DNA from: Macrostomum lignano
Lineage: Eukaryota
DNA: 64,000 bases
Direction: 5' to 3'
Assembly: GCA_002269645.1 (NCBI GenBank)
Contig: NIVC01000346.1
Location: forward strand, 124,001-188,000
Of the stretch, positions 7,414 to 58,933 are shown one piece after another. The notes below the pieces were generated by a model. That model was not told the DNA's origin and made no database searches. It saw only the letters and a list, made by a program, of their open reading frames with translations. Within the stretch, counting starts at the first letter, position 1, and each line of letters starts with the position of its first letter. The translations under genes and the position numbers were made by a program.

Positions 7414-11466
<4,053 letters not shown>

Positions 11467-23314: not shown

Positions 23315-26300
23315 TCAGTCATTCACGCCTCTGCTAACCAACAGATTAACCGGATCAGCCAGCGACTGCAGCCATCGAGCGGTTTCCGAGTGGCTCAAGC
23401 TGCCGAGTCGCCGTCCGTTGGCCTCGACCAGCCGGTCGCCCGGACGCAGTCGGCCAAATGCCGGTCCATCGGGCGACACTCGCGACACAGCGACCCCGCC
23501 GCCTGCTCCGCCACCAATCATACTACTATTAGCAATGCTGAATCCCAGGCCCCCTGTAGATTTCTGCTTCCAATTTTGACGACACAACGACACCCAAACC
23601 AGTTGGCGACCATTAAGAATAAATTTGGCCCTGTCCAGAGCGTCCATGTTGCTGCTGCTGCTGCTGCTGCTACTACTACTGTAACTGTAGCTGTGACGGC
23701 CTCGACGAGGCAATGGCGGAGGGGCAGCGGAGGGGGCGGCGGAGGGGCGGCGGAGGGTTGGCAGGCATTGGTAGGCCAGTGTTCCGATCGTACACGAGGC
23801 CGCCAGAAATGCCGCAGGAGGAGTCTTCGCCTGTTTGACTAGCCGCAGATGCGACACTTCTTCGATGCTGTTGATGCAGATTCGTTGCGGTTAGCAACAG
23901 AGGTACGGCTTGATAAGCAGGGAATTGCGGCAGGCTTCTGTTACTAATAAACGGGCGAAAAGCGCTCCGGTGACTTTCGCAGGCTATCGAGCCGTCAATA
24001 TGGCCAACAGGATTTACTGCGGACGGCGACTGGGGCGCGCTCTGATTGGCTAAGAATAGCGGCACGCTTTGATGTTTAGGCGAAGGCGGCACGCTTTGAT
24101 GTTTGGGCGAAGGCGGCACGCTTTGATGTTTGGCTGTAGGCGGCATCCTTTGATGATTGGGCGAAGGCGGCACGCTTTGATGATTGGAAGAAGGCGGCAC
24201 GCTTTGATGATTGGACGAAGGCGGCACGCTTTGATGATTGGACGAAGGCGGCACGCTTTGATGATTGGGAGAAGGCGGCATCCTTTGATGATTGGGTGAA
24301 GGCGGCACGCTTTGATGATTGGGAGAAGGCGGCATCCTTTGATGATTGGGCGAAGGCGGCACGCTTTGATGATTGGACGAAGGCGGCACGCTTTGATGAT
24401 TGGGAGAAGGCGGCATCCTTTGATGATTGGGTGAAGGCGGCACGCTTTGATGATTGGGAGAAGGCGGCATCCTTTGATGATTGGGCGAAGGCGGCACGCT
24501 TTGATGATTGGGAGAAGGCGGCATCCTTTGATGATTGGGCGAAGGCGGCACGCTTTGATGATTGGGAGAAGGCGGCATCCTTTGATGATTGGGCGAAGGC
24601 GGCACGCTTTGATGATTGGGAGAAGGCGGCACACTTTGATATTTGGGCGAAGGCGGCACGCTTTGATGATTGGACGAAGGCGGCACGCTTTGATGATTGG
24701 GAGAAGGCGGCATCCTTTGATGATTGGGTGAAGGCGGCACGCTTTGATGATTGGGAGAAGGCGGCATCCTTTGATGATTGGGCGAAGGCGGCACGCTTTG
24801 ATGATTGGGAGAAGGCGGCATCCTTTGATGATTGGGCGAAGGCGGCACGCTTTGATGATTGGGAGAAGGCGGCATCCTTTGATGATTGGGCGAAGGCGGC
24901 ACGCTTTGATGATTGGGAGAAGGCGGCATCCTTTGATGATTGGGCGAAGGCGGCACGCTTTGATGATTGGGAGAAGGCGGCACACTTTGATATTTGGGCG
25001 AAGGCGGCAAAATTTCATAAGTGGACGAACGCGGCGCGCTTTGATCTTTTATTGACGAATTTGGCACACTTTGATAAGCTGACAAAAGCGGCGGTGCGAA
25101 ACCTGAGTCAACGCTGTGTCTGACAATGGAACTATTCGATTCGTTTGATCGGATAGGGATTTCGTAAGCATCGCTTGGATCTGATTGAGCGCACGGACAG
25201 GAGACCTGGGTATTTGTGATGGCCTCCTCTGAGGTGACACAGTTTGCGGCGGCGATATTGCAGTAAACTGACGGCTCGGCTGATGACTCCGGAGCGGATG
25301 ATTCCTGCAGGTTTCAGTGGTGCGAAGGCACACTTCAGGGGCGATGATTATTAATCAGGGACACTTCAGAGGCAAATAAATTTTCATGGACAATTCATGG
25401 ACACTTCATGGCCGATTCTTCAGTAATACTTCAAGGACGAATTTTCAGAGATACTTCGTACTTCATAAGAATCTTACTTCAGGGACACCTCAGAGGCGAT
25501 TTAAGGGCAATTTCTTCGGGGCGATTTTTGGGCGATTCTTCAAGGGCGATTAATCAGGGGCGATTCCTCAGGGGCGATGTTTCAGGGGCGATTCTTCAGG
25601 GGTGATTCTTCAGGGATGATTCTTCAGGGGTGATTCTTTAGGAGTGATTTTTCAGGGATGATTCTTCAGGGGTGATTCTTCAGGTGTGATTCTTTAGGGG
25701 CGATTCTTTTGGTGGGATTCTTCAGGAGCGATTCTTCAGGGACACTTCAGAGAAGTTTCTTCAGCGACACTTCAGAGACGTTTCTTCAGCGACACTTCAG
25801 AGACGATTCTTCAGCGACACTTCAGAGACGTTTCTTCAGCGACACTTCAGAGACGATTCTTCAGCGACACTTCAGAGACGTTTCTTCAGCGACACTTCAG
25901 AGACGTTTCTTCAGCGACACTTCAGAGACGATTCTTCAGCGACACTTCAGAGACGTTTCTTCAGCGACACTTCAGAGACGTTTCTTCAGGGACACTTCAG
26001 AGACGTTTCTTCAGGAACGCATCCGGGGAAACTTTTCAGGGTCACTTTAGAGGCGATTCTTCAGGGACACTTCAGGGGTAATTCCTAGAAGAGATCCTTA
26101 AGACACAGTTCAGTACAGAATCTTCATGGGTCAGTTCAGGTTCCAAAACGATTTCAAATGACTCACCAGACTCTCCTTCTGCACAGAATCGTCATCCTGA
26201 AGATCGCCAGCTTGTCGCTGTTGCATCAACAGACGCCGGCGAGGCCTTCGCTCCGGCAGATCCTTCGGCAAGGACTGGCCAGTGGACGGTTCCGATGCAG

Positions 26301-29300
26301 AGGCGAGGAAATGAACTACCGCCGCTCGACTTCTAGGCGGCGGCGTCGGAGGCTGGCGGGTCTTGTCGCTGCTATTCAACATCAGCAGGGCTGCGGCTTT
26401 GCTAGCGACTTCGTCGTCTCGAGTTTGAGTAGGCCGGTCTCCGGCCGACAGCTGAGGCAGCAGGTAGCAGGTGAGCACGCGGATTGGGCCGCAACGGCTG
26501 GCAATGTCCTCGGGCTGCAGGCGGGGCATTGGCTCCGACTGGTTGTCACTGAGCCAGAGTGCCTGAGGAGCTCAAATTAGTATATAATATCAAGCATTTT
26601 GTGTTTAGGGGAGACTCCAGGAAAAATAGGGAACTCTTTAGGGAAGAGTTTTCAGAGAAACTTCAGGGAGGAGTCTTCAGGGACACTTCAGGAGAGTCTT
26701 CAGGGACACTTCAGGAGAGAGTCTTCAGGAAAACACTTCAGGGGAGAGTCTTCAGAAAAACACTTCAGGGGAGAGTCTTCAGGAAAACACTTCAGGGGAG
26801 AGTCTTCAGAAAAACACTTCAGGGGAGAGTCTTCAGAAAAACACTCCAGGGGAGAGTCTTCAGGAAAACACTTCAGGGGAGAGTCTTCAGGAAAACACTT
26901 CAGGGGAGAGTCTTCAGGAAAACACTTCAGGGGAGAGTCTTTAGGAAAACACTTCAGGGGAGAGTCTTCAGGAAAACACTTCAGGGGAGAGTCGTTAGGA
27001 AAACACTTCAGGGGAGAGTCTTTAGGAAAACACTTCAGGGGAGAGTCTTCAGGAAAACACTTCAGGGGAGAGTTGTTAGGGAAAAACTTCAGGGAGAGTC
27101 TTCAGAGAAACTTCAGGGAAGAGTCTTCAGGGACACTTCAGGAGAGTCATTAAGGACACTTCATGGTAGAATCTTCAGGGACACTTCAGGAGAGTCATTA
27201 GGGACACTTCAGGAGAGTCATTAGGGACACTTCAGGGGAGAGTCTTCAGGAAAACACTTCAGGGGAGAGTCTTCAGAAAAACACTTCAGGGGAGAGTTGT
27301 TAGGAAAACACTTTAGGGAGAGTCTTCAGAGAAACTTCAGGGAAGAGTCTTCAGGGACACTTCAGGAGAGTCATTAGGGACACTTCAGGAGAGTCATTAG
27401 GGACACTTCAGGGGAGAGTCTTCAGGAAAACACTTCAGGGGAGAGTCTTCAGAAAAACACTTCAGGGGAGAGTTGTTAGGAAAACACTTTAGGGAGAGTC
27501 TTCAGAGAAACTTCAGGGAAGAGTCTTCAGGGACACTTCAGGAGAGTCATTAGGGACACTTCAGGGTAGAGTCTTCAGGGAAACTTCAGGAAGAGTCTTC
27601 CGGGGAAACATTACAGGGAAGAGTCTTCAGGGGCACTTCAGGGAAACACTTCAGGGTCAGGGTAGTCTTTAGGGATACTTCAGGGCAGAATTTTCAGGAG
27701 AATTACTTCCGGGGAGATTCTTGAGGAGCACTTCAAAGGAGACACTTCCGGCAAGACCGAACACCAACACCCAGATAGCTTTCAACCATAGAAACTTAGA
27801 AGCACACACAAACCGAGCTCACCCTCAGCTGAGGCAGCCTGAGCATAGAGATCGGCAGGCACCGCAGATGATTGCCACTCAAATTCAGCACCCTCAGCGA
27901 GGCCAAGCGGCCCAGCTCGTCCGGCACCAACTTCAACCGGTTATCCCTGGCTGACAGCACAGCCAACGATCGACAAGTCCCAATCGCTTGAGGCAGTCGC
28001 TTCAATCGGTTGCTATCGCAATAAACCAGCTCAAGCTGATGCAGCCGTCCCAAGCCTGCCGGCAGTTCGTCTAATCTATTTTTAGCAACATGCAGTTCGC
28101 ACAGACTGAAACAGCGGAAACTGCCACCCCCGGAGCTGTCGCAGTTAAACTGCAATCGCATTATTCGATTGTCGCCAATTCTTAGACACCGCAGACTGGC
28201 TGGCAAACTCGAATCCGCAAGCTCTGCTATTCGATTCGAGCTGGCGTCCAGATCTGTGAGCTGCGGACAGCCGCCCAGCTGGTTGGGCAGGAAGTCCAAC
28301 CTATTAGACGATATGTCCAGCTGCTGCAGACTGGGGAACAGGACGGACTGCCTGTTGCCATGGGGAAGCGCAGCGGATGACAGCGCCAGTCTGCCGAGGC
28401 GGTTGTGGTCGACGCAGAGGTCGGTCAGACAGGGTAACAGAGATACGGACTCGGGCTGTGGGGCAATGGTGAACTGAACACTTCAGACTGAGCACTCATG
28501 ACTTCTGATGACCTGATGAGTACTCTCATGACCAATAATGAATGACCCGATGAGTACTCTCATGATCAATAATGAATGACCCGATGAGTACTCTCATAAC
28601 AGTAATGAATGACCTGATGAGTACTCTTATGACAGTAATGAATGACCTGATGAGAACTCTCATGACTACTAATGACCCGATGGGTACTCTTGTGACCAAT
28701 AATGCCAGCAGAAAAATTCATCACATGCTACATATACATCGAGCACTAACCAAGCTCTCCAGCTGATTTTCGCCAACATCGAGCCTCTCCAATCGATCCA
28801 AACGCCCAACAGACTCTGGCAGCAGTTTCAAATTGTTGTCACGAACTTCCAGAACGCACAGACTTGTTAAACTGAAAATATCAACGGTAAAGTCGCTTTG
28901 TTTACAAAATAAAAATTATATAAATTTGAAAGTTCGATTAACAAATCAAGCCCTGAAATCAAAGGATTTTCAAACGTTTAGGCCCTTAAAAGTCCTGTTG
29001 AAAACTTTACTGTAACAAGAATCTCTAGAGTCTAGCCTAGTGGTTAGAGCGACTCACGACTGAAAGGTCGGGGGTTCGATTCCCAATCCCACTCGGAACA
29101 ATTAGTGTCCTTGAGCAAGGCACTTAACTCTGCATTGCTTCAGTTCACCCAGCTGTAAAATGGGTGCCAGCATTAGCTGGGGTAATTAAGGGTGGGTGTG
29201 GCGACCCCCCCCCCCAGTCCATGGACTGAGCAGCCGTACGCAGCCTTCAGATGCGCCGCGCAATAGCTGCGGCTGAGCTGTCGGTTGCACATCTGGCCAT

Positions 29301-32300
29301 CAGGTGCCATCAATTATTATTATTACGAGCGTATTACCATTACAACGACTCAACGACTGTAATGCGATGGAGAGGCGACTGTTGAGTCACGAGCACATCA
29401 CGAGTTGCCGGATTGTAAAAAGAGTAGCGAAAAAGTCCGTCCAATAGTCGTTGTGTTAGCGCTCAACTTTTAGTTGTAAAAAATAGACGCATTGGATGCG
29501 AGTTATTGGCGACTTGTACCGTTACATATCGTCGTTTTAGAGTCACGAATGGACACGAATGTCCATGTCAGAGAGCTACTAAAAGCATACCGTAATGTGC
29601 TACTTAAAGTAATACTCTAAGAAAAGCCTATAGATAGTGACTCAGAACCCTACGTGGGATAAACGTTTGTTTGATCAAGGAACCGGATTTCAGCAGCTGT
29701 GTTTGCTTAACACCATATATGGTAATGGCGCTTACCGGATTTAGTTCTTGATAGTTGGCGTTAATAAGTTGATTGATTAAGTTTATGAGAGCCGTTTATT
29801 GTCGCGAACATTTGAGAGAAAGGCTTATTTTGTTTCCTAGGACACATTCCTAGAGGATCTACTGATTGATTTGAGTTATCCGTTACGTTTCGGACGTAAC
29901 GAAGAAGACGCCCTTCAGGAGGACCTATTACAGAAACTCATAGAATTCAATTGTTCATTAGGGCCCACGTTCTATTGTTAATTCCGAGTTAGTTACAAGA
30001 GGACTAAGAGATATTTGATTTTGCATATACCTGGCGCACTTGTTCCCCAGTGTCTAGATGTGAGAGTTTTTGAGTGACTGATCACCACTCTTAAACTCTT
30101 CCCTCCCATGGTACTCAGTGAGCAAGTTGTCTGTTTCACCCCTTGTAGTCTCATTATTTAAAGCATTTAACAAAGACAATAAAAATAAAAAACAATAAGA
30201 ATTCTGCAAAAACAACTCACTTGCCAATACAGTGCGGTAGTTTAACAATGGAGCACTGGTTTAATAGCAGATGCTTCAGATTGACCAAATCAGTCAACTC
30301 GTCTGGCAGGCTGAAAGCAACAACAAATAAACAAAATTTAGATTTAAACACAGGTAAAAAACCAAACTAAACTTTAATATTAATGTTTGGGCATGCATCT
30401 AATTTCGTATAGAGGTAAATAAAAATCGCGAAAAAATGTCATTAGTAGCAAAGCAAACAGTCAAGTGCATTTAAACAAAATCAAAAGCAATTTAAACAAC
30501 ATATAAACAGGAATATTCGTATTCATGCTTTTTATTCTCCGAGACAAAGCTTCCGGTTACCAAAAAAGGCGGGGGACAACGGTGCAAACAACATCACATG
30601 GGTACTTACTGATGGTTAATTTCAATTTTTTCTGGAAAAAAGTAAACAATTTCAAAAACAAATTTCAATTTCAAATCTGATTTCTCCAGTCTGACATCAT
30701 ATCTGATTCCCCAGTCTGACATCAGATCTGATTCCCCAGTCTGACATCAGATCTGATTCCCCAGTCTGACATCAGATCTGTTTCCCCAGTCTGACACCAG
30801 ATCTGATTCCCCAGTCTGACACCAGATCTAATTCCCCAGTCTGACACCAGATCTAATTCCCCAGTCTGACACCAGATCTGATTCCCCAGTCTGACATCAG
30901 ATCTGATTCCCCAGTCTGACATCAGATCTGATTCCCCAGTCTGACATCAGATCTGATTCCCCAGTCTGACATCAGATCTGATTCCCCAGTCTGACACCAG
31001 ATCTGATTCCCCAGTCTGACACCAGATCTGATTCCCCAGTCTGACACCAGATCTGTTTCCCCAGTCTGACATCAGATCTGATTCCCCAGTCTGACATCAG
31101 ATCTGTTTCCCCAGTCTGACACCAGATCTGATTCCCCAGTCTGACATCAGATCTGATTCCCCAGTCTGACATCAGATCTGATTCCCTAGTCTGACATCAG
31201 ATCTGTTTCCCCAGTCTGACATCAGATCTGATTCCCCAGTCTGACACCAGATCTGATTCCCCAGTCTGACACCAGATCTGGTTTTCCAGTCTGACATCAC
31301 ATTGGATTGCCAGTCTTATGCTTAAATTTTTACTATTCAAAGATTAAAACAATTAAAACAAACCCACCATTCCAACAGGTTGGAACTTAAATCAAGACTG
31401 TGCAGGTATCTGCAGGCCTTTAGTTCCACCGGTAACTCAATCAGACCTAAAAATAAAGAATAAAGTTTAAATTTAATCCTTTGAAGCACATTTTCAGCTG
31501 ACAAACACAGAAAAGGGTTAATCATAATAGACAGCCAAATAAACTAGAAATCTTACAATTATTTCTGAGATTCAGTTCGCACAAGCTTGTCAATGATGCA
31601 ATGCTTGGCGGCAGTGTGTGAATTATGTTGTTAGACAGCGATAAGTGGTACAGACTTTGGCAGCACAGGAGCTCCTGAAATTTGTTATTTATAAATGAGA
31701 ATCGACTGTCAAACAGGATTTTTGTGAACTGATTATTAATTAGTGTTTTTAGAAGGTCGAACATTGATAGGATATTTTCTGAAGGACAATTATAGATTGA
31801 ATATTTTGAGGGCCTAAAAATTAATGGCTGGCTATTTTTTGAAGGTCGTTCATTAATAGGATATTTTGAAGGCCGATTATTGATTGGGTATTTTGAAGGC
31901 CGATTATTGATTGGGTATTCTGAAGGCCGATTATTGATTGGGATTTTTGAAGGCCGATTATTGATTGGGATTTTTGAAGGCCGATTATTGATTGGGATTT
32001 TTGAAGGCCGATTATTGATTGGGTATTTTGAAGGCCGATTATTGATTGGGTATTTTGAAGGCCGATTATTGATTGGGTATTCTGAAGGCTGATTATTGAT
32101 TGGGTATTTTGAAGGCCGATCATTGATTGGGATATTTTGAAGGCCGATTATTGATTGGGTATTTTGAAGGCCGATTATTGATTGGGTATTTTGAAGGCCG
32201 ATTATTGATTGGGTATTCTGAAGGCCGATTATTGATTGGGTATTTTGAAGGCCGATTATTGATTGGGTATTTTGAAGGCCGATTATTGATTGGGTATTTT

Positions 32301-33127
32301 GAAGGCCGATTATTGATTGGGTATTCTGAAGGCCGATTATTGATTGGGTATTTTGAAGGCCGATTATTGATTGGGTATTTTGAAGGCCGATTATTGATTG
32401 GGTATTTTGAAGGCCGATCATTGATTGGGATATTTTGAAGGCCGATTATTGATTCTGGGATTTTTGAAGGCCGATTATTGATTGGGTATTTTGAAGGCCG
32501 ATTATTGATTGGGTATTTTGAAGGCCGATTATTGATTGGGTATTCTGAAGGCCGATTATTGATTGGGATTTTTGAAGGCCTATTATTGATTGGGATTTTT
32601 GAAGGCCGATCATTGATTGGGATATGTTGAAGGCCGATCAGTGATTGGGATTTTTGAAGGCCGATCATTGATTGGTAATTTTGAAGGCCGATTATTGATT
32701 GGGATTTTTGAAGGCCGATTACTGATTTGGGATTTTTGAAGGCCGATTATTATTAGGACAGTTTGAAGGCCGATCATTAATAGGGATTTTTGAAGGCCGA
32801 TTATTAATTGGGATTTTTGAAGCCCGATTGTTGGTAGGATATTTAGAAGGACGATTTTTAATATCTAATTGTTAAAGGACGAATCCAAAATTGGGAATTT
32901 TATTGAGCCACTTCTCAATGCCATTCTGAAGTTGAATTCTGAAAAGTTGATTTATTAATTACCTTTCGAATTTCTGCAATTTTATTATCATCCAACAGCA
33001 GCACTTCCAGGGTTGCTTCATTTTTAAAAGCGTCCATTGGCACCTCCAGTAGACGTTGGCCAGTGAAGTCCAGGGTTCGAATCTCAGCCAATCGCTTTGG
33101 CCGAAATGAGCACAACAGACGCTCCAT
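23315..33127 (-). CDS. LAP-family protein (LRR array + LAPSD + one C-terminal PDZ; Erbin/Densin-180/LET-413 architecture), about 1197 aa; exons 33127-32963, 31674-31557, 31446-31368, 30310-30221, 28871-28751, 28455-27823, 26562-26167, 25304-23315 (apparent frameshift at about 23721-23747)
   Basis: All introns are GT-AG with matching phases (0,1,2,2,0,0,0). N-terminus RTLDFTGQRLLEVPMDAFKNEATLEVLLLDDNKI; successive LxxLxLxxNxLxxLP repeats; LAPSD motif ALWLSDNQSEPMPRLQ...VLTCYLLPQ; PDZ GGLGFSIA...VSRVSPDGPAFGRLRPGDRLVEANG. The exon at 30221-30310 (LPDELTDLVNLKHLLLNQCSIVKLPHCIG) was found manually and is not in the ORF track. Confidence 0.88.
24060..25010 (-). repeat. 27-bp coding minisatellite encoding about 35 copies of PPS(P/S)NHQ(SV/RM)
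   Basis: In frame with the acceptor at 25304; no stop codon in the reading frame. Confidence 0.9.
25400..26070 (+). repeat. TTCAG-core minisatellite (e.g. TTCTTCAGCGACACTTCAGAGACG), LAP intron 7
   Basis: Tandem degenerate units. Confidence 0.9.
26620..27720 (+). repeat. 27-bp minisatellite TTCAGGGGAGAGTCTTCAGGAAAACAC, LAP intron 6
   Basis: Tandem units with higher-order duplication. Confidence 0.94.
28490..28700 (+). repeat. About 33-bp tandem repeat ATGACCTGATGAGTACTCTCATGACC..., LAP intron 5
   Basis: About 6 units. Confidence 0.85.
29032..29325 (+). mobile_element. tRNA-derived SINE with CORE-like central domain, family A (copy 1)
   Basis: A box TAGCCTAGTGGTTAGAGCG; B box GGGTTCGATTCCC; central CCTTGAGCAAGGCACTTAAC...TCAGTTCACCCAGCTGTAAAATGGG resembles the MIR/CORE domain; (ATT)n tail; second copy at 58444-58720. 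Confidence 0.85.
30680..31300 (+). repeat. 25-bp minisatellite CCAGTCTGACATCAGATCTGATTCC, LAP intron 3
   Basis: About 24 units, each containing the palindrome TCAGATCTGA. Confidence 0.95.
31780..32830 (+). repeat. 27-bp minisatellite GAAGGCCGATTATTGATTGGGTATTTT, LAP intron 1
   Basis: About 35 units. Confidence 0.95.
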
Positions 33128-35261
33128 TGATTAAACAATGGGCTTGAATATCAATTATGTTTATTGCAGTTTCTTGCTGGACTTGCTAAAAAAAACGTTT
33201 TATTTGAATAGAAAAAAATAACTAGGATAATTTTACAAATCTAAATGTCCAAGCAATTCCTAAACAAAAACCGCATGCTTAAGCAAATCAACTGACTGTT
33301 ATTTAAGTCTCCAGACTTTTATGGTGTATAGTACAGATTTATAACATCTCATATCTTAGGAAACATTTGTATATTCCATTAAATAAGTAATATATGTAAT
33401 AATTATTTCAGACCTTCTTTAAATTTACACCAATCTATGACTCATGCTTGTAAAGAATATAGCTAGCTTGTTTTGGCTTGGTCTAACCACTCACTCTAGT
33501 ATCTATACAAGGGACTTGATGGTAAAAGTATTGCCAATTTGTCACACCAACATTAGACTATACACATTCTACCATTGAAAAATTGTGATTTCTTAAAAAA
33601 AATTTGTTAGCAAGGAAGGAGACTAGGATATAGAATAAGGAAAATAGAGTTCGTCACTCTCTGTACTTTACTCTGTTGAAATACTTTTCAAAAACCCATA
33701 GACCTGCATTAGGAGTTCTAGAAAACTTGAAGATGCACCTGACACCTAGAAAATATTAGGTATGCCATCCCATACCAACCATACCATTTTAACCATCCCA
33801 TACACAGATTCAATCTAATGCGATTATATGATTTATACATGGTTTTAAATATATTAATTTCTATGGTAATATTTGTAATTACAATATATTTTTGTTTTAA
33901 GTGGACCAAAAAGTTTTTAAACAAGTTTTGGTCTGAATAAGAGCAACCTTGACTACAACCTTTCCTCATTTCAAAGAAGCCAACTACTAGGAATGAGCTA
34001 ATAAGTAGTGTTTCAAGTAAATATCAAATATTGCATCTAACCTATAAATGTAGTTTTTTTTTTAAATAAAGTTGAAAGAAATCATATAATATATGTGCAG
34101 GGCCCCTCCTGATTCTTTTACAAAATTGATAATTGTATAACTCATTTTGAATGTGTGCCAAATCTAGGAAAACACATTTGTTATAATACATGTATTTTTC
34201 ATAATATTTTATGCAAACTAATTTTTGTTTAAACTAGCAATAAATTTTAGTATAAATAGAAGCATTTTTGGTGGAGGAGAGACCAACCTCATGCATTGTG
34301 GTTGCTTAAAAAAGAAAGCCAGTATCAAATAGTAAGAGTTCCAAGTAAACATTATTGAAGATTGTTTTCCGAGTTATTCATTTGCAGAAGAGAAGTGAAG
34401 TAGATGGAGGTGTACACAGTATATACTACTAAGAAGCAGAAGTAGTAGCTACCAAAATTTATAAAGACAGAAGTTAAGCCCTGTTACAACTTTGGTGACC
34501 TCAGTAGGATTTTTAATAGAGAGAAGCTTTAGCCCATTACAACTTGGTGGCATTAATGGAATAGCTAAAAGAGGGAAGCAAACCCACTATGACAACTTTG
34601 CTAACATTGTGGGATTATTCATAAAGACAGAAGGTTAGCCCTTTGACATATATTAGTAGTAGGGAAGATATATACTCTGCTGCCAGAATTTTGTATAAAA
34701 GCCATAGGCCTAGTGTGTGAATATATGAGCCTATGTAAAAGAGGCCAAGATAGATTTTTTATAAATGATAACCAACTCAGTGAGTGACATTAAATTAGTT
34801 TTACAAAACAACTCTGCCCCAATAATTTTTGCAGATTGAACTTCAAAAATAAGTGAATCTGCTTCCAAATACTAGGGTATTTAAACTTTTTTGATAGTAG
34901 AAATACATGGACCTATGCTTTCTTAAATATGCTTGATAATGTATGCATGTATAAAGAAAAAGCAATGTAATTAATTGATCACAGAAATATGAGGGGTGTT
35001 TTATAAGTACTTGAACTTTTTTATGCTGCTCATAAACAACATAATCAATCATTACAAGTTAGATGTTGCTAGAAAGTGGCTTTTCCCTTTTACAATTTGC
35101 TACTAGAATCATTTGGTTCCATCATTTTTATCAAAATTTACAACTACATATGTAGCAAAAGGTCACCTATAGGCTTACTAGAAATTTGGAGAAGAGTAAT
35201 TGCAACATTAAACTGGGAAAACAGAGATGTGTGGTGATTAGCAGCAACTTTTTTTACTCGA

Positions 35262-35560
35262 ATAGATGCACTTGGACCATCTGGTAAGCATGCTATTAAT
35301 GGTGTCTATGTACAGCTGTTGAGAGATGATGTAGAGCAGAATTCCCCTAACTTCCTCATTGATCTGGTTCCTGTTTTCATACACTCATTCTTTCAGGTGG
35401 CACTTCAATTCTGGGAACAAAACAAAGTCTGCAAGTGCCAGATCTGGAGAGTATGGAGGATGAGAGAACCCTGATCTTTAGCTTTCCAATTGCTTCAACG
35501 GTCCTTTGGGCCATGTGAGGTCTTGTGTTGTCCTTCTTTTGAGTTCATGTTCATGGTGAT
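35262..35560 (-). mobile_element. Degenerate mariner (DD34D) transposase C-terminal fragment
   Basis: Minus strand gives DNTRPHMAQRTVEAIGKLKIRVL, a frameshift, then HPPYSPDLALADFVLFPELKCHLKE*VYENRNQINEEVRGILLYIISQQLYIDTINSMLTRWSKCI. These match the mariner DNARPH, YSPDL and RWxKCI motifs. Confidence 0.85.
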
Positions 35561-38203
35561 GCAGCAGCCAAGGTGGACAATGTGCTCTTCAAACAGTAAG
35601 AAAAAGCAATGAAATTGATAGACCTCCCCCTTTGCGCTGTCAGTATATGTAGTGCCAAGAATGCCATCCACTGTGCCATCTAGGAACCCCCAATCAGCCA
35701 TGACTGCTTAAATCTCACCTATAGCCACCTCAACATCACTTTAAGAAAAACCTCATCACTGAACAAGCCAATGCCATGCTCCTCACCTGCATCTATTTGG
35801 GGCATTATCTTTTCTTGAGCCTACTATAGTGTCATCAACCTGTCAGTCAATCTCTCATGCCTTCTCTATTGTCACCAATGCAATGACCTGGAATAGTGGT
35901 TTTACTGCTTGGCCTTTGCTAGTGATATGCTCCATTTCCTTTGGAGGACACTCCATTGATGTCAGCAGCATTTTAGATAACCCCTTTAAGCTAGTTAGGC
36001 ACTGCTTCGTAACAGTGTCTAGGTACAATCTACCTCATATATACATACATACAATGATAGCAGGCAATCCCTATTCTTAAAAAAATATAGAACATGCCTA
36101 GATGCTAATATAAGTTAGCCTGTCCAATATTATTTGTGATCTTGAGTCAAGCCTTATGCCTCTACTACTACTACTACCATCACTATGATTCAATCTGCAG
36201 CTATAACTACTAATAGCTGCATTCTACTATTGGCATTCAACTTATTGAACTTTGCATACAGAGGGGCCTAGTGTGCCCTCTTGGCATATAGCTTAGCATA
36301 TAGAGTTTGCCAAGACAGCAAGTGGGACCAAAGTTCTGAGTCCCAATCAATGTATATAGTTAATATACATAAAAATGATTAAGTTTAAGTTTGGCAAATT
36401 ACATGTACATAGTTAGATTAGCTAAATTTTAATCAAAATGAGTAGCTCCTTGCCCTTTCAAAAAGAATAGAAAACTAAAAAAATGTATTTAACTTTTCTT
36501 AGAAGTTAAAAGTAAAACAAAAATGTTAAATTAAAATAAACTAGTTTTAACTGATCATTTTTTAATATTAAATTTTGTGAGCCCTAAATATTGAATTCTT
36601 ATTTTTAATTTTTGTTTTGGCATTTATTTGTATATGATAAAAGTTCATTCATTGGCATACATGGGTTATACCAAATTCATCAACAACTAATTTGTCAATA
36701 GACCTAAAATTTAAGAAATTGAAGGAAATCAAATTTGTCAACAATTAAACCAAGCTGGGTGATTTTGTCAACAATAAAACATATTACTATAAAATTTATT
36801 CCTTAATGCAATAATTGTAAATTTCTATTGTAATTTAGCCAGTTTAAAATCTATAGGTTATAACAGGTTGTATAAAAATATCAAATAAAAACCATTTGCC
36901 TTTGTTATCTTATATGTATCTTCTCAATAGGCTTGTGTTTTTGATTTTCAGTGTGTAATAAATATATACTAGCTAGTCAATAGTAATGTTGGGCATGATA
37001 CTCAAAAAAGTATCAATGAAAACTGATCCTCCAATATCCATTCTAAAAAAATATTGCCAATAACTAAAAGTCTGATATCCCAATTTGAGTTTTGTCAATA
37101 CCCTAATTCCAATACTTTATTCCAATACTAGTTTTTTTTTAAAAAGCAATGTCCAACAAGTATAAATATATAATTTAAGCTTATCAGACCTTTTCCTAAA
37201 TATATAGGAAAAAAGCAAGCTTAACATTGTTTTAAATGAAGAAACCTTTAGTAAATAAAAAAATAAATCAAAAACAATCAGTTGCCACTATAGTCAATCA
37301 GATAACTACCTATTAGCCACTGTAGTCAGTCTACTTTATGTCTATTAGTATTATTATTGTTCTAGTATAGTATAGTAGCTTTAGGTCTATAATTGCTATA
37401 CATGCACACTTAATTCCTTAGCCTTTTAGTTGGGTATTAGATGTACTTAGTCAGCCAGCCAGACCAACTACTCTAAGCCAAGGTACAGACTTTAAAGCCT
37501 TATCTCTGATTTGGCAATACCTTGCCATGCTGCTCTTTATACATACATATAAACCTACATGCAAATTGAGTCATTTTCTCTTTCCTTGGCCAATTCAACT
37601 TGGCCTTACCCAATATGTGCTTTTAATAGTGAATTTATTTATTTGTTGCTGACTAATTATTTATATCATTCACTAACTTGCTTATGTTATTATATCCTAT
37701 TGGAAAAAATGTTGAAAACCTGCAGACACATACTTTAGAAAAGAGTCAAATTATTTTACTGCGCTTTAGGATTGTAGATGTTCCATTTCATTGAAATAAA
37801 AGTTTGCTAACTTTCCAAAATTGAAATTGAAATTTTCCAAAACCAAAATTCAAAATAACAAAGTTTAGTATCACCAACACTCACTTATTACTTTCAATTT
37901 ACTACTAATGCAAAATGAAATACATGTACTGGTATATGTAGCAGAAATTAGTTTATTTTTAGCAAATTTTTTAGACACTTCTAAAATTTTGACTTCTAAT
38001 TTTTTTTAGAAATTGAACTTTACTCTTTGCCATTTACAGTTTTACAACTTTTTCCTATAGGGTTACTATAGTGTAGTGCTAGTATATTTACTATTGTAGA
38101 AATTGTAAAATCAATCGGCAATTGGTGACTGACAGTGAAAGTATTGTAGAACTTGTGGCATGATAATTGATAAATTTTAATGATAATTACTAATTACCAA
38201 CTA

Positions 38204-38389
38204 TGAGCTCATACATGCACAACTTTGGGAATCACTTGGCCATTTCCATTGGCAACACACACATGTAAGTTGCTATTGGCTGAGACCAGTCATGTGACTA
38301 CTTTTCTATCCAATAGCAACTTACATGTGTGTTGCCAATAGAAATGGCCGAGTGAATCGCAAGGTTTTGCCCAAGCATGTATGAGCTTA
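38204..38389. mobile_element. Palindromic (foldback) MITE flanked by TA
   Basis: TA|TGAGCTCATACATGC...GCATGTATGAGCTTA|TA; arms of about 90 bp are largely complementary. Confidence 0.75.
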
Positions 38390-39581
38390 TAATTATACTA
38401 TTTTAATCTAAAAACTGGTTTTAAAAAAGAAAATATCTATTTTTTACTTTTATTGACTAAAATGAAATATTTACATTACTTTCTATAAATTATGTCATTA
38501 TTTCCTTTGTTTTAAAGAAATTTTTATTGTTTGCATGTTTAAAATTTCAAAAGTATCAGACTGTTAGACTAAAAAGAACATTTGAGAATTGTATTAGAAG
38601 TTACCAAAGTCCGATATTGCAATGTTGTAGCCAGGAATTTCAATTGGAAAGGGCAGGTCCAAGGTTGGCTTGGCTAGCCATGTCTAATGCCATTGCCATT
38701 GCCACTTTGCACATATATCAGCATTATACAACATGCTATACCATAGTGATAGCCAATGGCCCAATCTCAATGTTATGTTCTATTTGCATAATGGTTTTAT
38801 AATGGTATTGCATAGCATTACATCATGGTTCCTATTTCTCTCTTTGCTTTGTTTTTGGTACTTGCCATGCCTAACCCTACTTCCCAAGTGATTGGAGGGG
38901 GGGCAGCAGCCCCCTGGCTATGCCACTACAATATTGTTGAAAAAATTATTGGTTTCTAATATTTTAATATACAAAAGGTATCATTAATAGTATTAAAGTA
39001 TTGGAATTATACCCAGCATTGGTCAATAATATATTGTCAGGTAGGGGCCCAACTGAATTTGTCAATTTGGTAGCACTTAGATATATATATACATAGGGCC
39101 TATATGTATATTAGCATACATAAGCTAAAGAAGCAATTTATGTTTTAACATACACTAGTACACAATTGATAATCCTGACCCTAGTATTCTACTTGGCCCA
39201 ATTCTAAAAAGCCTAGAGAATCTAAAAGCCTAATTTGAATTTAAATTAAGATGACATAAGTTAAGCTTGCCTTTTGGCTTTTGCCTTAAATAACACTAAC
39301 AAAGAAAAGTGCCCTAGGTTTTTTTCATCCATAACTTTGCATTTTCAAGACCAGGATGCAGTCAAAAACTGGTCTAACATAATACTACTCAATATCCATA
39401 ATACTAAATTGTGAAATCCATATCACATCCTTGCAAAAAATTCTGGTGCACTTTTTGCACCCTGAGTCAAATTTCAGGGTGCGATTTTTAAGACCAGGAT
39501 GCTATTTGCACACATTCGCACAAAAAACCCAGTAGAAAACCCAAGTTTAATCTAGAATATTGAAATTGAATTGCATATCAT

Positions 39582-40544
39582 CCATAGTCAAGAAGGTGGC
39601 AAGTGCACGCGGGAATCAATTTATGAAAAAAAATCCTTGGTGCACGCCAATGTACGTCAATTTTTTAAAACCCTTAACATGATGTTTCTGTTGCACGCCA
39701 AAAATCTTGAATACCAAAAATCATGTACGCCGAAAATTGTGTACACCGTATTAGATATGTAATGTATCTCCATATCTATTTTAAAAGGAAACATATTTTG
39801 TACTTATTTCTCACTTATTATTTGTATTTCATATTTGTATTCTGTTTCTGCATTTACTGTACTTTTTAGTGTATATATATAATTTTGCATAATTGTTTTA
39901 TAATGTAGTTTGTTTTATTGCTCAATGTAACTAATATATAATAAATATTGCTTGTAAGAGTTCGCCGCGCTCTGATTTGGCATTTTCGACTGATCGTGAT
40001 AATTCAAGTGACAGTCCTCGGCATTCATTTCGTTACAGATACTATTTTTAAATAAATTTTCTACTTACGTTAAACAAAGTTTATATAAAAAAAGGAAATT
40101 CGCTACAAAGAACATAGTGAGTATCAAAAACTTTTTCTTCACATTTCAAGAAACAAATAAACTAAAAGTCTACAAGAGTCACAAAATAAGAGCGTTTAAA
40201 AGTTATTGGATATTTTAATTTTAATGTAGGCTGTAAAGTGTAGGCCTGGCTATAGGCTAGGCTGTAGCCTCAACTAGTTGGTTTAATCAATATTCAAATT
40301 CAATTGTTCACGTTTAACTTTATATATTGTATATATATAGTGTATACATCTATATCTGACTTGTTGATATACTGTCAGTTTGTAATTGCACGCCAAGGTT
40401 ACACGCCAAGTAAAAAACTTGTACGCTGAAAATTTAGGCGTGGCTTGAGACCCCTATTTGCACGCCAACTTTGCACGCCAAAATTTTAGCGTGGCTTGTG
40501 CATGTGGGAAAATTCCCGCGTGCAGGCCACCTTCCTGAGTATGG
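39582..40544. mobile_element. Non-autonomous DNA transposon, 19-bp TIR CCATAGTCA(A/G)GAAGGTGGC, 8-bp TSD CATATCAT
   Basis: TSD at 39574-39581 and 40545-40552; TIRs match at 17/19; subterminal GCACGCC/GTACGC motifs at both ends. Confidence 0.88.
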
Positions 40545-40758
40545 CATATCATATATATGCCATACACCCATATGTAATATATACCAACATTGGAAAAGAC
40601 TAAATAAAATAAGTAAATTGAATATCAAGTCTTAAAATTTAAACTATGACTGAAAGTATTAATAAATAATAATTAATAATTAATAAAAATAAATAAATGA
40701 GAAAATATTTATAGACCATAATAATCCCATATGAAAGCTTAGATAAAGAAGGGGAGCC

Positions 40759-41422
40759 CCATAGTCAGGAAGGTGGCAGTTTGGTCGGAAAATTCCGGCG
40801 CACACAAGCCCTTTTTGGGCACACAACGGCGCACAACGGCGCACAGCGGCGCGCTACAACAGCGCACAGCGGCGCACTGGCGCACAGCGGCGCACAACGG
40901 CGCACACCAGAGGACACCGGCGCATGGCGGCGCGGCGCGGCGGGCGCCGCGCCACATGCAGCGTTACCCTTGTGGCGATCCCATGTAACGATGTAAGTCG
41001 TTACTTGTTACAGTACACTATTCACTGTTCTATCTAATGTAACACTGCATTCTACCAAAAAATAAAAAATAAAATAAAATATTTTCCTTTTCCTTTTTAC
41101 CTTTGTTTTTGCCATTTGCTTACTTTTTATGTTTGTTTTGTTTTAAAAATTAGAAATTAAGTTAAAAATTTTTTAAATTTCTATTTTCGGTTTAACGATC
41201 TCAATTTCTCATAATATAATATAGATAGCCCGTAACCGTCCCGTATATTGGCGCACAAAAATTGTTGCTATGTTGTAAAAAAAGGTCTTTTATTGTCGCA
41301 AGGCAGGTAGTGGCGGGCGCACAACGGCGCACACAAGGGTTTTTGTGTCGGCGCACGGCGCACAATTTTGGGAGAGGCCAAAATTTGTTCCGGCGCACAC
41401 TCTGCCACCTTCCTGACTATGG
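40759..41422. mobile_element. Non-autonomous DNA transposon, 21-bp perfect TIR CCATAGTCAGGAAGGTGGCAG, 8-bp TSD GGGGAGCC
   Basis: TSD at 40751-40758 and 41423-41430; subterminal GGCGCACA repeats at both ends. Confidence 0.92.
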
Positions 41423-42289
41423 GGGGAGCCAAAAAGCAGGAATTAAAACTCAGCGGGCCTAGCTATTGGCATGGGCATGGCCATGAGCGGCGACAATTGT
41501 GTCGGCGTACGCATTTCCAGCCTGGCCTGGGCAGAGAAAATTACACAAAAGTAATATACACATGATTGAGTGTATAGAAAAAAAGATAATAATATACAGT
41601 ATAAAAGTAAGTGAATAAGAACAAGTAATAGTAGGGCCATGGCTTAAAATTTAATAGAATCGTTGATCCGATAAGCTCAACTTAAAAATTTCACACTTGG
41701 TGACATGCTAATTAATTGGAATGCAATCAAAATGCGCGAGTTATGCATGATACACGTACTTCGTGGTCGGAACGTCGTATCATCGATCCGGGACTCATTT
41801 AAAACAGTACGAAGAATTCTATGAAACAAACATTTTAGCTGTCAAAATATATCACGTAAAAATCATATTAATTTTATGCATGCAATGCAAAAAACGGTTT
41901 AGTAGTCTTTTCCAAATTTAGTGAATGTCAAATTAAATTATTAAAAGTAGTACAGACATTTCATCACACATGTTAACAAAAGTGGGTAGTGCAACGGAAT
42001 GAAACAGTGAAAATTGTACATTGTAAATATATTTAGGATTGTTCTTATTAACACCTCATACCTTGAAACAGAAAGAAGTTAGTCAAAAAGGCATATTTTA
42101 CATAACTGACCTTCAAATCGGAAAACTCGTTTCATTGCTACATCCACAAGAAACTCCAAGCCTACAGTAGATCGACGTGTTTAACATGCATAGTCATATG
42201 CGTAATATAATTGTAAACTGGGGTCAAAAAATGTTTTAATTTTTAATTTTTAGAGAAGACCCTAAATCAACATTTTAGTTTCTTAGACT

Positions 42290-43557: not shown

Positions 43558-44869
43558 TTATCGGTTCCATTTTTTCCTGTCGCACCAACGGCCGAATCCC
43601 TGAAGCTGAAGGCGATTGAGTTGCCCTTGAACAATTGCAAAGCATTCTAACCATCCCTTGATGAAGTTGTAGTTGGCATTTGGTCTCACTCCGAATCGTA
43701 GGCATTGAAAAGTTTCAGCACTGGTGTTGAGATCAAGGTTGTGACTTCGCTTCTTCATTTGAGTCACATTTCCATGCGCGTACAATAAGCTGCAGGCATT
43801 CGGAAATTTGCAGTGCAAAGCCAAGGTTTATATCAGCAGCTTCATTTAAAGGACTTAGAGAAAACGCACCAGGGCTGCTGACGTAGTTGTAGTAGCCTTC
43901 TAAGTTGGGTGGATGGTAACGGAAAACGGCACGGGTGTCTCTGCGTACCAGCATAGCATTGCCAACACGTTGAGCAGTGAAACATTTTGTAAACAGATTG
44001 CACAGTGTCGCTGAAAAATGAAAATGAAAGAAAACATAAGGCTATAGTTATGGTGATAGTAGAATTAAGGATTGACATATGCAGCTATTGAAACTTACTT
44101 CTTGTGTAAAAATAGTCTGGCTCGAATGAACACCGTCACGTTGGGCTCGGGCACAAACAGGTCCTCGATTCCTCGATGAAGGAGCCAGACTCTCCCGTCA
44201 CGAACGCGCCCGCAGACCGGTTGAGCACAGCCGACACGAGCACCGGAGTGTGCGGATTCCGGTGCACAGGCGCCAGGTTGAACGAGCCCACACGGAAGTG
44301 GTACAGAATCCGCAGCGAGCTCACCGCGATGCTGCTGGGCAGGTCGGTCGTGTGAGCTGCAATTCGATAACGATGTAACGATATCAGCACACCGGTGCAT
44401 GCATGGACTCGCCAGTGAGTGAACTGGGCACAGCTGCAGTCACACACTGCATGGGCACAGCTGCAATGCACACACTCATGCATGCTCAGGCCTGACAGAA
44501 TGACTTCTCACCCTGCTTGAACTTTGCCAGCCTCCGCCTGTTCACAAACGAGTCGCACTGGCCGTGTCCGTACAGCCATGCAGTGCGGAAAGCCTCGGCA
44601 GTCGCCAGCAGACACCAGCGATGCTCAGCGACCATGCTGGCAGCTGCACAGCTCTCTGTCGTGTGGCAGCTAAGCACGCAGACAGCGATGCTGCGGTCAG
44701 GCAGTTGATGAGGCTCCAGCTTCCACACTCCATCAGTGGGCAGGTCGTCAGGCGGACAGGCGACCAGTCTGTCGTAGTCGGTGAGCCCCACGATGGACGC
44801 TGACGAGACGGCGATGAGGCAGCAGAGGAGCACGAGAGTAAAATACTGTTTTGCGGCTTCTATAGACAT
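43558..44869 (-). pseudogene. Secreted PAN/apple + LamG/pentraxin-like protein, frameshifted copy; exons 44869-44512, 44356-44099, 44010-43558
   Basis: Signal peptide and PAN cysteines as in the 55329 copy. A 16-nt deletion in exon 2 gives a premature stop. Exon 3 homology passes through three frames (DTVQSVYKMFHCSTC / GNAMLVRRDTRAVFRY...GFAL / CKFPNAC...FQCLRFG...KGWLECF). Confidence 0.75.
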
Positions 44870-48500: not shown

Positions 48501-50567
48501 CTGCTTGTAGAGCAGTCGATTCATATTGTTTTCATACAAAATATTAAAGCAGTACAGTTTACTTTCTCCTGAGCAAACAACGTGAACGATTGTCAGAAAA
48601 CTTAAGTGGCAAGCTCTTGTGGTGCTTATAAATTAATAATGGATTCTACTGTATACCAAACAATTTAACCTAAGATCACGTGGCTCTTTGCTGATCTATA
48701 ATTATTCAAAAATACAAAACAATTAAAATCACAAGCCCATGCCAGTGATAATAGTCTATGGTGATTCTTCTCCCTACTACTTTCCCACAGCTTCACAGGA
48801 AGAGTAGTACAAAGCGAAAAGAATTCAAAAAATTCTCATTGAGATTTTTTCTTCGTTCTGGGGTATTCTGTGGACTAAGCAGTAACTGAATAATTTTTTG
48901 TTGTCTATATGGTTTTAGGCTTTGATAATGGATAAATAATCAGCGGTCCCAGTGCGTGACAACGATTGTCTGGCGATCGCCGGTAGGCGCGAGCTTCAGA
49001 CAAATCGTTGTCACGTGCTGCGACCGCTGATTATTTACATTGTTTTTCTATTTGACGATCCTACAGACAATGCATTTTTTGTAGTAATGGATTGTTCTGC
49101 ATTAAAAATGTGAATAATGATCGTCAAATTGCTAAACAATGACAATTAACTATTTATGCCCAAATGAAGACAAATATTTGTGTGCGTTGGTGCATTGGTT
49201 TCAGTGCGTTGGCTTCTTGATAAACGTTCGCGCAACACTTATTGCGTTGTTGCAGTTATTACTTCTTTGATTTTAATCCCGACATAGGGCTTATCAGTGT
49301 CAGTGCTTCTCCTCCAAGTACATTCGATGGGTCGGAAAAACAGGCGAAGAATGCCGGCAGTGGATACCCAGCCTGTGGCACGACAGAAGCCAGCGCTGCG
49401 GCTACGACTTCTTACTAGCCAGACCTGACATGCTGGTCAAGCACTGCAACCAGATCGGCTGCACCGAGGCCTCGATTCGCAGCTACATAGCCGACTTGGA
49501 GGCAGCTGGTCACGCCTGCGGCGGTCTCGGCTCCTGCAGTCCCGGTCCATTGAACATGAGCACCGATATGCGTATGTCGGCCTATTGCCAGTGCAAGCTC
49601 GGCAAGGCTGGTAAACTTTGCGAAAGCGTTTACGCCTCTTATGTTGAGTGGACGCCATGGACCGTGTGTTACGATAAAGGACTTGGTGGGTTGTTTTCTT
49701 GTTTTATTACTACTATGTCAGCTTTTTGCATTAGCTGTTTTGTTGGAGCAAACGCATCAGTGCTCAGATGGGATCCGCGGTGATGTCAGAAAGTCGCAAT
49801 GAAAATTCCTAGCTCAGAAATTTATCGAATCAAATCACTGAAATCCCAACTGTCGGGTCAAAATATGACTTTTCAGGTTTCAGCCATCAAGGATGTTTGA
49901 CCGCTACAATGCCCAGTCTTCACTTTCTAGCTATTTTTTTATTAGAGGCAGAGGTGTTGTGTGCACCCTGGCGCACTTTAAGCGACATAGGCACACAACC
50001 GGCGAGAGGCATTGCTGCCCATTCCGCCGACTCCCCTGAGCAGGCATACAAGCGCGCTGATACGTACGCAGGCACACACTCACACAGGAGTGTACAGCGG
50101 CCCTGATTTTCTGATTTTTGTTTTCGTCCGCAAGTCTCAAATGAATGCAGCCTGTCGTGGCTCTGTTCAACTCACCTCACAAACTTGACATTGCATTGAA
50201 AGAGTAACAAAAACAATTTTCAGTGCTAGCCAAGCAGAGAGGTCGGCTCCGATTCAGGCACTGCCAAGAATTGCATCAGAAACAAGAGGGCAGCCCGCCG
50301 CTCTGCGTCAATGGCAAAACAGAACAACTGCCCTGTCCAGATGTTGCCGAGCATCTGGAGGAGACTTTGACTCATTCGGACTATGGAGTGACATCGCAGG
50401 CGGTCATATCAATGTGGCGAATCGTTGAACTATTGATCCTGACCGATCTACTGCTGGTTGGAATGCTTACAGGAGCCCTGATCTACCACAGGATCGTGTT
50501 GGGCGGGTGGGGAGTTGAAGAGCCCAAAGCTGAAAAAGAAGCTGATTCTGCACCGCAGAAAGCTTGA
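45516..50567 (+). CDS. Uncharacterised type I membrane protein: signal peptide, novel N-terminal region, several EGF-like modules, TSP1-like domain, TM, short tail; about 673 aa; exons 45516-45903, 46528-46646, 46992-47346, 47733-47853, 47997-48293, 49288-49685, 50224-50567
   Basis: All junctions are GT-AG and phase-consistent (1,0,1,2,2,1). EGF-like C-x-C-x(2-3)-G-(Y/K) motifs (FCFCEEGY, CICKTGYGNLDC, YCQCKLGKAGKLC); TSP1-like WTPWTVC...RGRLRFRHC...C...C; hydrophobic segment IVELLILTDLLLVGMLTGALIY. Confidence 0.78.
46790..46915 (+). repeat. 9-bp minisatellite GGGACCTTC (intronic)
   Basis: About 13 units. Confidence 0.9.
47375..47690 (+). repeat. 20-bp minisatellite CCAGACACCCGAATACTTTA (intronic)
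   Basis: About 15 units. Confidence 0.92.
49935..50103 (-). mobile_element. SINE-like family B, 5'-truncated copy with A-tail
   Basis: Matches 53530-53707 and 841-930; the T-run at about 49934 is the A-tail on the minus strand. Confidence 0.7.
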
Positions 50568-51042: not shown

Positions 51043-54644
<3,602 letters not shown>

Positions 54645-58443: not shown

Positions 58444-58720
58444 TAACCTAGTGGTCAGAGCGTCGGACTCACAACTTGAAGGTCGGGGGTTCGATTCTTG
58501 ACTCACTCGGAACAATTAGTGTCCTTGAGCAAGACACTTAACTCTGCATTGCTTCAGTTCACCCAGCTGTAAAATGGGTGCCAGCATTAGCTGGGGTAAT
58601 TGAGGCTGTGTGTGGCGACCCCCCCCCCCCCTAGTCCATGGACTGAACAGCCGTACGCAGCCTTCAGATGCGCCGCGCAATAGCTGCGGCTGAGCTGTCG
58701 GTTGCACATCTGACCATTAG
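58444..58720 (+). mobile_element. tRNA-derived CORE-like SINE, family A (copy 2)
   Basis: Highly similar to 29032-29325 throughout. Confidence 0.85.
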
Positions 58721-58933
58721 GGCAGGTGTAATCAGTCGAAGTTTAACATCTTTATAGAAACATGCCCATGGCTACTTCACGTAATGTCTTTAAGAAGTAA
58801 ATTTTAAGAAAACATTCATATCTTGCTGCAAATATTCTAGCTGCAGCCAGCACTGTTATCCACTCTTTTAATTAATCAATCAGCTGTTCTTGTTTTTCAA
58901 ACTCTTAATCTTGATCAATTAGACGTCCTTGGC

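Follow-up and report, generated by a model that had tools for sequence, protein, structure and literature searches.

What could have removed nearly every CpG dinucleotide from several kilobases of a flatworm genome? The locus that raises this question lies in Macrostomum lignano (assembly GCA_002269645.1, contig NIVC01000346.1, positions 124,001 to 188,000 of the forward strand); this stretch of 64,000 nucleotides is called the window hereafter, and all coordinates refer to it. The CpG-depleted block covers about 6.2 kb immediately upstream of LAP, a minus-strand gene encoding leucine-rich repeats (LRR) and a PDZ domain. The composition and content of the block point to native, old, transposon-derived DNA that was probably CpG-methylated in the germ line, unlike its surroundings, and eroded by deamination of 5-methylcytosine (5mC).

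A 6.2-kb Block with Twelve CpG Dinucleotides

The limits and composition of the block are as follows:

33274..39481, no strand: CpG-depleted block; 12 CpG, observed-to-expected ratio (o/e) 0.07–0.08, GC 32%, tandem repeats 1.3%

The initial annotation had estimated by eye about a dozen CG dinucleotides in about 6.2 kb, and the exact count bears this out: the 6,201 nt at 33280–39480 (GC 32.3%, CpG o/e 0.074) contain 12, at positions 33652, 33821, 34370, 35259, 35499, 35635, 36008, 37762, 38116, 38349, 38358, and 38612. This corresponds to a residual density of 1.9 CpG per kb and to the loss of more than 90% of CpG. As background we used the window's other unique sequence, after masking of tandem repeats with Tandem Repeats Finder (TRF), in which the CpG o/e is 0.86. 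The expectation for the block is then 138 CpG at the background o/e and 160 from base composition, against the 12 seen (Poisson P = 1.5e-43).

Edges were located by maximum likelihood, with P(G|C) treated as a two-state Bernoulli variable. They were placed at 33274 (2-logL support interval 33122–33348) and 39482 (39429–39608), and the two-state model beats the one-state model, which has no domain, by 80.7 log units. Between 33.3 and 39.6 kb, every 600-nt segment is significantly depleted. Elsewhere in the window's unique sequence no comparable block is present, the only departure being a mild dip at 20.4–21.3 kb, and the approximately 39 kb of other unique sequence, which include old exons and introns, have a CpG o/e of 0.79–0.92. 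Low GC content is not the explanation, because adjacent kilobases of equal GC have a CpG o/e above 1: 1.21 in the left flank (32001–33000, GC 0.37) and 1.06 in the right flank (39501–40500, GC 0.32). The windowed scan thus finds the block unique in the window, and the depletion persists once composition is accounted for, as had been anticipated. The accompanying claim that flanks and satellite arrays are CpG-rich holds for the flanks and only partly for the arrays, since four of them (2535–4257, 6303–7057, 26632–27631, and 30671–31299) are CpG-poor, having no CG in the repeat unit.

Signature of the CpG Loss

The missing CpG have left a reciprocal trace. TpG and CpA are in excess in the block (o/e 1.26 and 1.20, 1.23 combined) relative to the flanks (1.10–1.19), with 412 TG and 423 CA, that is 835 sites where about 680 are expected. 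Depending on the baseline, this surplus amounts to 75–155 dinucleotides, comparable in size to the CpG deficit of 126–148. The near equality of the TG and CA counts indicates that both strands were hit equally, without an asymmetry of the transcription type. The GpC o/e is 1.42 inside the block and 1.28–1.29 in the flanks, so there is no general avoidance of C beside G, and the TpA o/e is 0.93. The depletion is therefore a CpG-specific footprint of the deamination type, that is, a classical decay of CpG into TpG and CpA by transition, and not an effect of composition.

If the block were at equilibrium, f(TG+CA)/(2 f(CG)) would be 35, a high ratio of loss to gain that exceeds the one known for human AT-rich DNA. 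Assuming that transitions make up 30–50% of substitutions, the 835 TpG/CpA sites would regain 12 CpG at about 3–5% neutral divergence if none were lost, which suggests that the CpG-destroying process was active in the block until recently.

Could CpG have been destroyed or avoided here without stable 5mC, by a repeat-directed mutator resembling repeat-induced point mutation (RIP), by deaminase editing, or by selection against CpG? The depth of the depletion (o/e 0.07), beyond what ordinary methylation decay would lead one to expect, speaks for such a process. However, classical RIP depletes CpA and TpG and enriches TpA, and the pattern in the block is the opposite, with CpA (1.20) and TpG (1.26) enriched and TpA at only 0.93. 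Neither internal nor within-window duplicates of the block sequence, which might have acted as a RIP trigger, were found, so that a repeat-directed process, which the initial annotation had offered as an alternative, lacks both the right context and, within the window, a duplicated sequence to set it off. Nor is it plausible that selection acted on 6 kb of non-coding DNA riddled with stops. We consider this whole class of explanations very unlikely.

Content of the Block

Two features were recognized inside the block:

35250..35808, minus strand: degraded relic of a mariner-family transposase, catalytic domain (phmmer against PDB)
38199..38394, no strand: foldback or MITE-like (miniature inverted-repeat transposable element) hairpin of 196 nt, a near-perfect inverted repeat (self-BLAST, RNA fold)

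The mariner relic matches SETMAR/Hsmar1 (E = 4e-13) and Mos1 (E = 2e-5) in phmmer searches of PDB, although three frames are needed to reassemble it and in-frame stops are present. It had no match in Pfam, and a word-indexed protein search with the relic returned one match, at 34% identity. The relic shares in the depletion, with three CpG at 35253–35800 where 26.5 are expected, and its PDB relatives SETMAR and Mos1 are too distant for its ancestral codons to be inferred. It is the sole coding relic found in the frame searches made: Pfam on the three minus frames and PDB on the two plus frames other than +2 gave no match. No open reading frame (ORF) of the block remains open for more than 113 codons in any frame, and a tRNA search of the block found none. 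The block is thus non-coding, and the scattering of the mariner relic over three frames with stops, together with the lack of any longer ORF, makes it look old.

The hairpin aligns with itself at 77% over 205 nt in self-BLAST, its arms are 87–100% complementary, and it folds as RNA at −115 kcal/mol (z = −17). Two of the 12 residual CpG fall in it. When its arms are compared, one of the 11 differences is of the CG/TG kind, in what is a small sample. Rfam searches of the block gave nothing above threshold, only sub-threshold matches to miRNA families, which the hairpin causes. The hairpin might give rise to small RNAs.

A single large transposable element (TE), or a long terminal repeat element, was considered as an identity for the whole block and ruled out, because no terminal direct or inverted repeats were found between 33.1–33.5 and 39.3–39.7 kb. 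BLAST of the block against the window in reduced alphabets (C>T or G>A merged) also yielded nothing above shuffled controls. The CpG-type transitions that the initial annotation ascribed to TE relics inside the block are therefore presumptive.

Native or Foreign Origin

The block might also be foreign, either an assembly chimera, a contaminant, or a horizontally acquired fragment of a heavily CpG-methylated genome, as the initial annotation had allowed. It differs from the window average in GC content (32% vs. 44%), in CpG, and in tandem repeats, which cover 1.3% of the block and 32% of the remaining window. The M. lignano assembly, based on PacBio reads, was difficult to build (PMC5730564). 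Moreover, the block showed no homology to other parts of the window in BLAST, where the only matches were MITE terminal repeats lying outside the block.

Once CG, TG, and CA are set aside, however, the alternative finds no support in composition. The delta* distance (×1000; symmetrized dinucleotides minus CG, TG, and CA) between the block and 3-kb chunks of the host is 96–187, comparable to the 129 that separates the two halves of the block, and hence carries no foreign signature. The unusually high GpC is also common to block (1.42) and host (1.28). Nor is the scarcity of tandem repeats peculiar to the block, because the DNA next to it on the right, at 39.5–46.7 kb, is likewise poor in them, yet CpG-replete. 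An internal chimera of 6.2 kb would require two false joins, the ORFs expected of a contaminant with a compact genome (e.g., a bacterium or a diatom) are absent, and block sequences had 0 exact matches in metagenome and viral collections, which is weak evidence. A foreign origin is therefore highly improbable in our view.

Substitution Clocks Outside the Block

If the process that emptied the block had acted on the whole region, the CpG around it should be hypermutable; typically, methylated CpG show at least a 10-fold excess of transitions. We compared transitions at CpG and at other C/G positions in dispersed duplicates and in satellite arrays outside the block, one of the arrays adjoining it:

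31837..32856, no strand: minisatellite within LAP intron 1, with 27-bp units that contain one CpG each

In dispersed duplicates (five pairs, 83–94% identity; a site was counted as CpG if it is CpG in either copy), transitions occur at 8 of 171 CpG sites and at 37 of 574 other C/G sites. In 14 satellite arrays the figures are 78/897 (0.087) and 116/2809 (0.041), an approximately 2-fold difference that is rough because variants within an array are not independent events. In the 27-bp satellite next to the block, 1 of 76 CpG and 7 of 299 non-CpG C/G sites show a transition, so that CpG is not hypermutable there. As these values are far from a 10-fold excess, the surroundings have been spared the emptying process over several per cent of divergence. 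The data support a decay confined to the block, in a spatial mosaic in which the surrounding CpG show little or no hypermutability.

Among the repeats that served as clocks are two sets of short dispersed repeats, 83–91% identical and not assigned to a family (836–1072, 49929–50110, and 53393–53715; 29033–29304 and 58444–58721). An inverted duplication at 44120–44821 and 55365–56261 (89–94% identity), without a transition excess at CpG, carries an ORF with an apparent signal peptide and a cysteine-rich domain, which we take, by eye only, to be PAN/apple-like; in the second copy, the ORF has undergone an in-frame 27-bp repeat expansion at 55.7–55.95 kb.

The Left Edge and the LAP Gene

On its left side the block approaches the 5' end of LAP:

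32963..33127, minus strand: first coding exon of LAP (LRR+PDZ); ATG at 33125–33127, donor AAAG/GTAA at 32963/32962 (ORF and Pfam)
33177..33196, minus strand: candidate 3' splice or trans-splice acceptor, cgttttttttag/CAAG (predicted from the sequence)

Pfam identified LRR_8 and LRR_4 on the LRR exons (LRR_8 on exon 1 and on the exon at 27796–28299) and PDZ on the ORF at 23315–23857; with an LRR exon as query, no M. lignano protein was matched. The edge had been put about 150 nt upstream of the LAP start codon, in good agreement with an ATG at 33127 on the minus strand and an edge at 33274. To the precision of the scan, the left edge falls together with LAP exon 1, behind which comes the young 27-bp satellite. 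Nearly every LAP intron (23300–33127, minus strand) holds a different minisatellite of 25–27-bp units (e.g., 24059–25045, 25505–26075, 26632–27631, 30671–31299, and 31837–32856), some of which yield long spurious ORFs.

The acceptor motif, a strong polypyrimidine-AG that precedes the LAP ATG by about 60 nt, suggests that the block could serve as a 5' intron or as an outron for trans-splicing. It might accordingly belong to a transcribed unit (LAP 5' untranslated region intron, outron, or an unannotated non-coding unit) methylated in the manner of a gene body through germ-line transcription. Besides the motif itself, this possibility is favored by the spliced-leader trans-splicing of 39% of M. 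lignano genes (PMC5730564) and by the prevalence of gene-body methylation among invertebrates (PMC11292947). In such a case, the exons and introns of the gene should share the depletion. This is not what we found: the CpG o/e is 0.78 in LAP exon 1, 0.78–1.12 over the LAP coding exons, and 0.88 in the unique parts of the other LAP introns (e.g., 28.5–31.5 kb), so that a gene-body rule does not explain the location of the block. The adjacent intronic satellite lacks CpG hypermutability, the symmetry of TG and CA speaks against a transcription-strand bias, and neither an exon-like ORF nor an Rfam family was found in the block. We regard methylation of the gene-body type as improbable here.

The Right Edge and Its MITEs

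On the right side, the block is followed by two related elements:

39582..40544, no strand: MITE1, non-autonomous hAT-like, CpG o/e 1.07; terminal inverted repeat (TIR) CCATAGTCAAGAAGGTGGC; flanked at each end by the 8-bp target-site duplication (TSD) CATATCAT
40759..41422, no strand: MITE2, of the MITE1 family; 8-bp TSD GGGGAGCC; CpG o/e 1.38

From the 8-bp TSDs we assume that both are MITEs of the hAT type. MITE1 has 19-nt TIRs with about 5% divergence and an intact TSD, and its insertion junction (39582) falls within the support interval found for the right edge (39429–39608). The TIRs of MITE2 are 100% complementary over 23 nt (arms at 40757–40779 and 41402–41424, overlapping the TSD), from which MITE2 appears to be a very recent insertion and its family recently active. 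When MITE1 and MITE2 are removed, an AT-rich remnant of 322 nt is left, with 2 CpG where 4.1 are expected (P = 0.22 for this short sequence), and CpG-rich DNA resumes at about 41454.

The TIRs of the family start with CCATAGTCAGGAAGGTGGC, and the interiors of both members consist of short repeats rich in CpG, GCACGCCAA and GGCGCACAAC. Similar internal motifs recur in another fragment at about 41454–41530.

Because both edges adjoin selected or young sequence, their sharpness alone does not prove an epigenetic or methylation boundary. Thus, of the targeted mosaic with a sharp boundary that the initial annotation had proposed, the mosaic confined to one block stands, and the targeting system with a sharp boundary stays hypothetical, the edges being an exon with a young satellite on one side and a young MITE junction on the other, where the age of the sequence or selection could make the transition just as sharp.

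The same observations bear on a different history, in which the block was methylated in the past, either here or before being relocated by rearrangement or duplication, and is so no longer, its edges being mere junctions of old DNA with younger or selected DNA. Such a fossil footprint would account for the coincidence, within resolution, of the edges with the exon and young satellite and with a young MITE whose TSD is intact, and for the presence at the edge of a MITE1 without CpG loss; it would also fit the low global 5mC reported for M. lignano (PMC11292947). On the other hand, only 12 CpG persist among 835 TpG/CpA sites, a number that the divergence of about 3–5% estimated above would restore, so that methylation would have ceased only recently. 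Furthermore, with about 39 kb of other unique sequence at an o/e of 0.79–0.92, a spatial mosaic is needed in any event. We consider a purely fossil footprint rather unlikely, though less so than the other alternatives discussed so far.

DNA Methylation as the Probable Cause

We are thus brought back to methylation in place as the probable explanation. The block would be native, old, non-coding M. lignano DNA, made of decayed transposon remnants within AT-rich filler. It would have long been CpG-methylated in the germ line, probably still or until recently, and the surrounding DNA would not. Spontaneous deamination of 5mC would then have turned nearly every CpG into TpG or CpA, on both strands. 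The left edge would be the place where the old block meets the selected or unmethylated exon 1 and 5' region of LAP and a recently arrived satellite, and the right edge the place where it meets recently arrived hAT-like MITEs. Candidates for recruiting methylation include heterochromatin, small RNAs (e.g., from the hairpin), and the act of transcribing a 5' outron; being a TE does not in itself seem to be the targeting signal, since the young MITEs and satellites nearby keep their CpG. Methylation as the cause, its action in the germ line, and its persistence are all three what we infer. A footprint of long-term 5mC deamination was also what the initial annotation had expected, and it remains the best reading of a loss that is specific to CpG, is matched by a reciprocal and symmetric excess of TpG and CpA, and leaves GpC intact.

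Several points weigh against this reading. An o/e of 0.07 is below the values known for methylated compartments of other invertebrates or for human AT-rich DNA. MITE1, at the very edge, keeps its CpG (o/e 1.07), so that any methylation of the block is not spreading into it, and the exons and other introns of LAP are not depleted. Finally, two reviews differ about what is known.

Flatworms are usually cited as having lost CpG methylation. M. lignano is reported to retain DNMT1 and DNMT3 (PMC11292947, PMC9246332, PMC10658182), whereas both were lost in parasitic flatworms and planarians (PMC11292947, PMC10658182). Its global 5mC is reported to be low (PMC11292947, PMC10658182, both citing Wasik et al. 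2015, a study that reportedly includes whole-genome bisulfite data for this species). Besides the common gene-body pattern, 5mC is also found on TEs in some invertebrates (PMC11292947). The PacBio-based M. lignano assembly is redundant through hidden polyploidy, with 180 Mb in duplicated blocks of at least 95% identity (PMC5730564), and a homeologous copy of the block should therefore exist.

Comparison with Known Systems

The footprint is of a familiar kind, to which the block adds an instance from a lineage with a scarcely charted methylation pattern. Simmen in 1999 and Suzuki in 2007 reportedly described methylated and unmethylated domains in Ciona. The mosaic methylation of invertebrates (Ciona; gene bodies of annelids and molluscs) resembles the situation reported here in its kilobase-scale domains of low o/e beside DNA with an o/e of about 1, in germ-line 5mC deamination as the cause (here a probable one), and in the presence of DNMT1 and DNMT3 (PMC11292947 for the general pattern). 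In these systems, however, the depleted domains are the bodies of broadly expressed genes and the depletion is moderate, whereas here it is extreme (0.07) and affects non-coding DNA 5' of an undepleted gene. The bulk of vertebrate genomes offers another parallel, with CpG islands at promoters, CpG-depleted, non-coding DNA that reaches up to the unmethylated, CpG-retaining 5' ends of genes, and an excess of TpG and CpA. The landscape is nevertheless reversed, since here it is the depleted sequence that forms an island, amid 58 kb of CpG-replete DNA. The block is also about three times more CpG-depleted than human AT-rich DNA.

CpG methylation of TEs or heterochromatin, as in some invertebrates, in plants, and in fungi such as Cryptococcus (Dnmt5, centromeric repeats), likewise singles out old, transposon-derived, gene-free DNA; unlike in these systems, the young, CpG-rich MITE1, MITE2, and satellites are unaffected here. 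Fungal RIP shares with the block a C>T hypermutation in a sharply bounded repeat block and AT-rich, stop-riddled relics, and differs from it in the context (CpG here, not CpA), in the TpA surge that the block lacks, in the duplicated partner, which was not found, and in the host, here an animal.

Near-complete CpG erosion in a non-genic block provides evidence, from sequence only, that methylation in this lineage would have been strong, long-lasting, and local, and the usual gene-body rule of invertebrates is not followed at this locus. More tentatively, and with the odds rather against it, DNMT1 and DNMT3 of M. lignano may act not on gene bodies but on sparse, discrete, gene-free blocks of old DNA, methylated almost fully in the germ line. 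Such "inverse CpG islands" would stand out against a genome that is otherwise unmethylated; promoters would set their limits, and the expansion of tandem repeats would be shut out of them. If true, this arrangement would explain both why global 5mC is low and why CpG erosion is so extreme locally; we know of no animal for which such a methylation landscape has been described. Should such blocks be common, a segmentation of the genome by CpG o/e would map its historical germ-line methylome, and the blocks would be targets for asking how DNMTs are recruited in a flatworm that regenerates and is amenable to transgenesis. Should the block be a one-off, it would be a mere curiosity of one intergenic region.

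Other Repeats and Genes of the Window

An Iroquois-class homeobox gene lies on the plus strand at 7900–11500; its ORF (about 8.9–11.5 kb) is 100% identical to the M. lignano protein A0A1I8J4E6 of UniProt. The homeodomain is split after ...MTLTQV by an intron that a 23-bp satellite fills (9680–10598).

Two inverted arrays of a 16-bp satellite, TCTGTGTCAGATGTCT, about 90% identical, occupy 2535–4257 and 6303–7057. The roughly 2 kb between them contain another 23-bp array, and the whole may be a large inverted-repeat structure. At 51246–51928, a 15-bp satellite, AGCACCAGAGGCGCC, is present in 45.5 copies with 100% matches, and must therefore have expanded very recently. A 16-bp satellite located 33 kb away (17367–18151) resembles it at about 84%, in the inverted orientation. 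Long (TAG)n and (ATAG)n microsatellites adjoin the ORFs found on the minus strand at 52239–53424, which, by eye only, are presumably exons of an EF-hand calcium-binding protein resembling reticulocalbin or calumenin.

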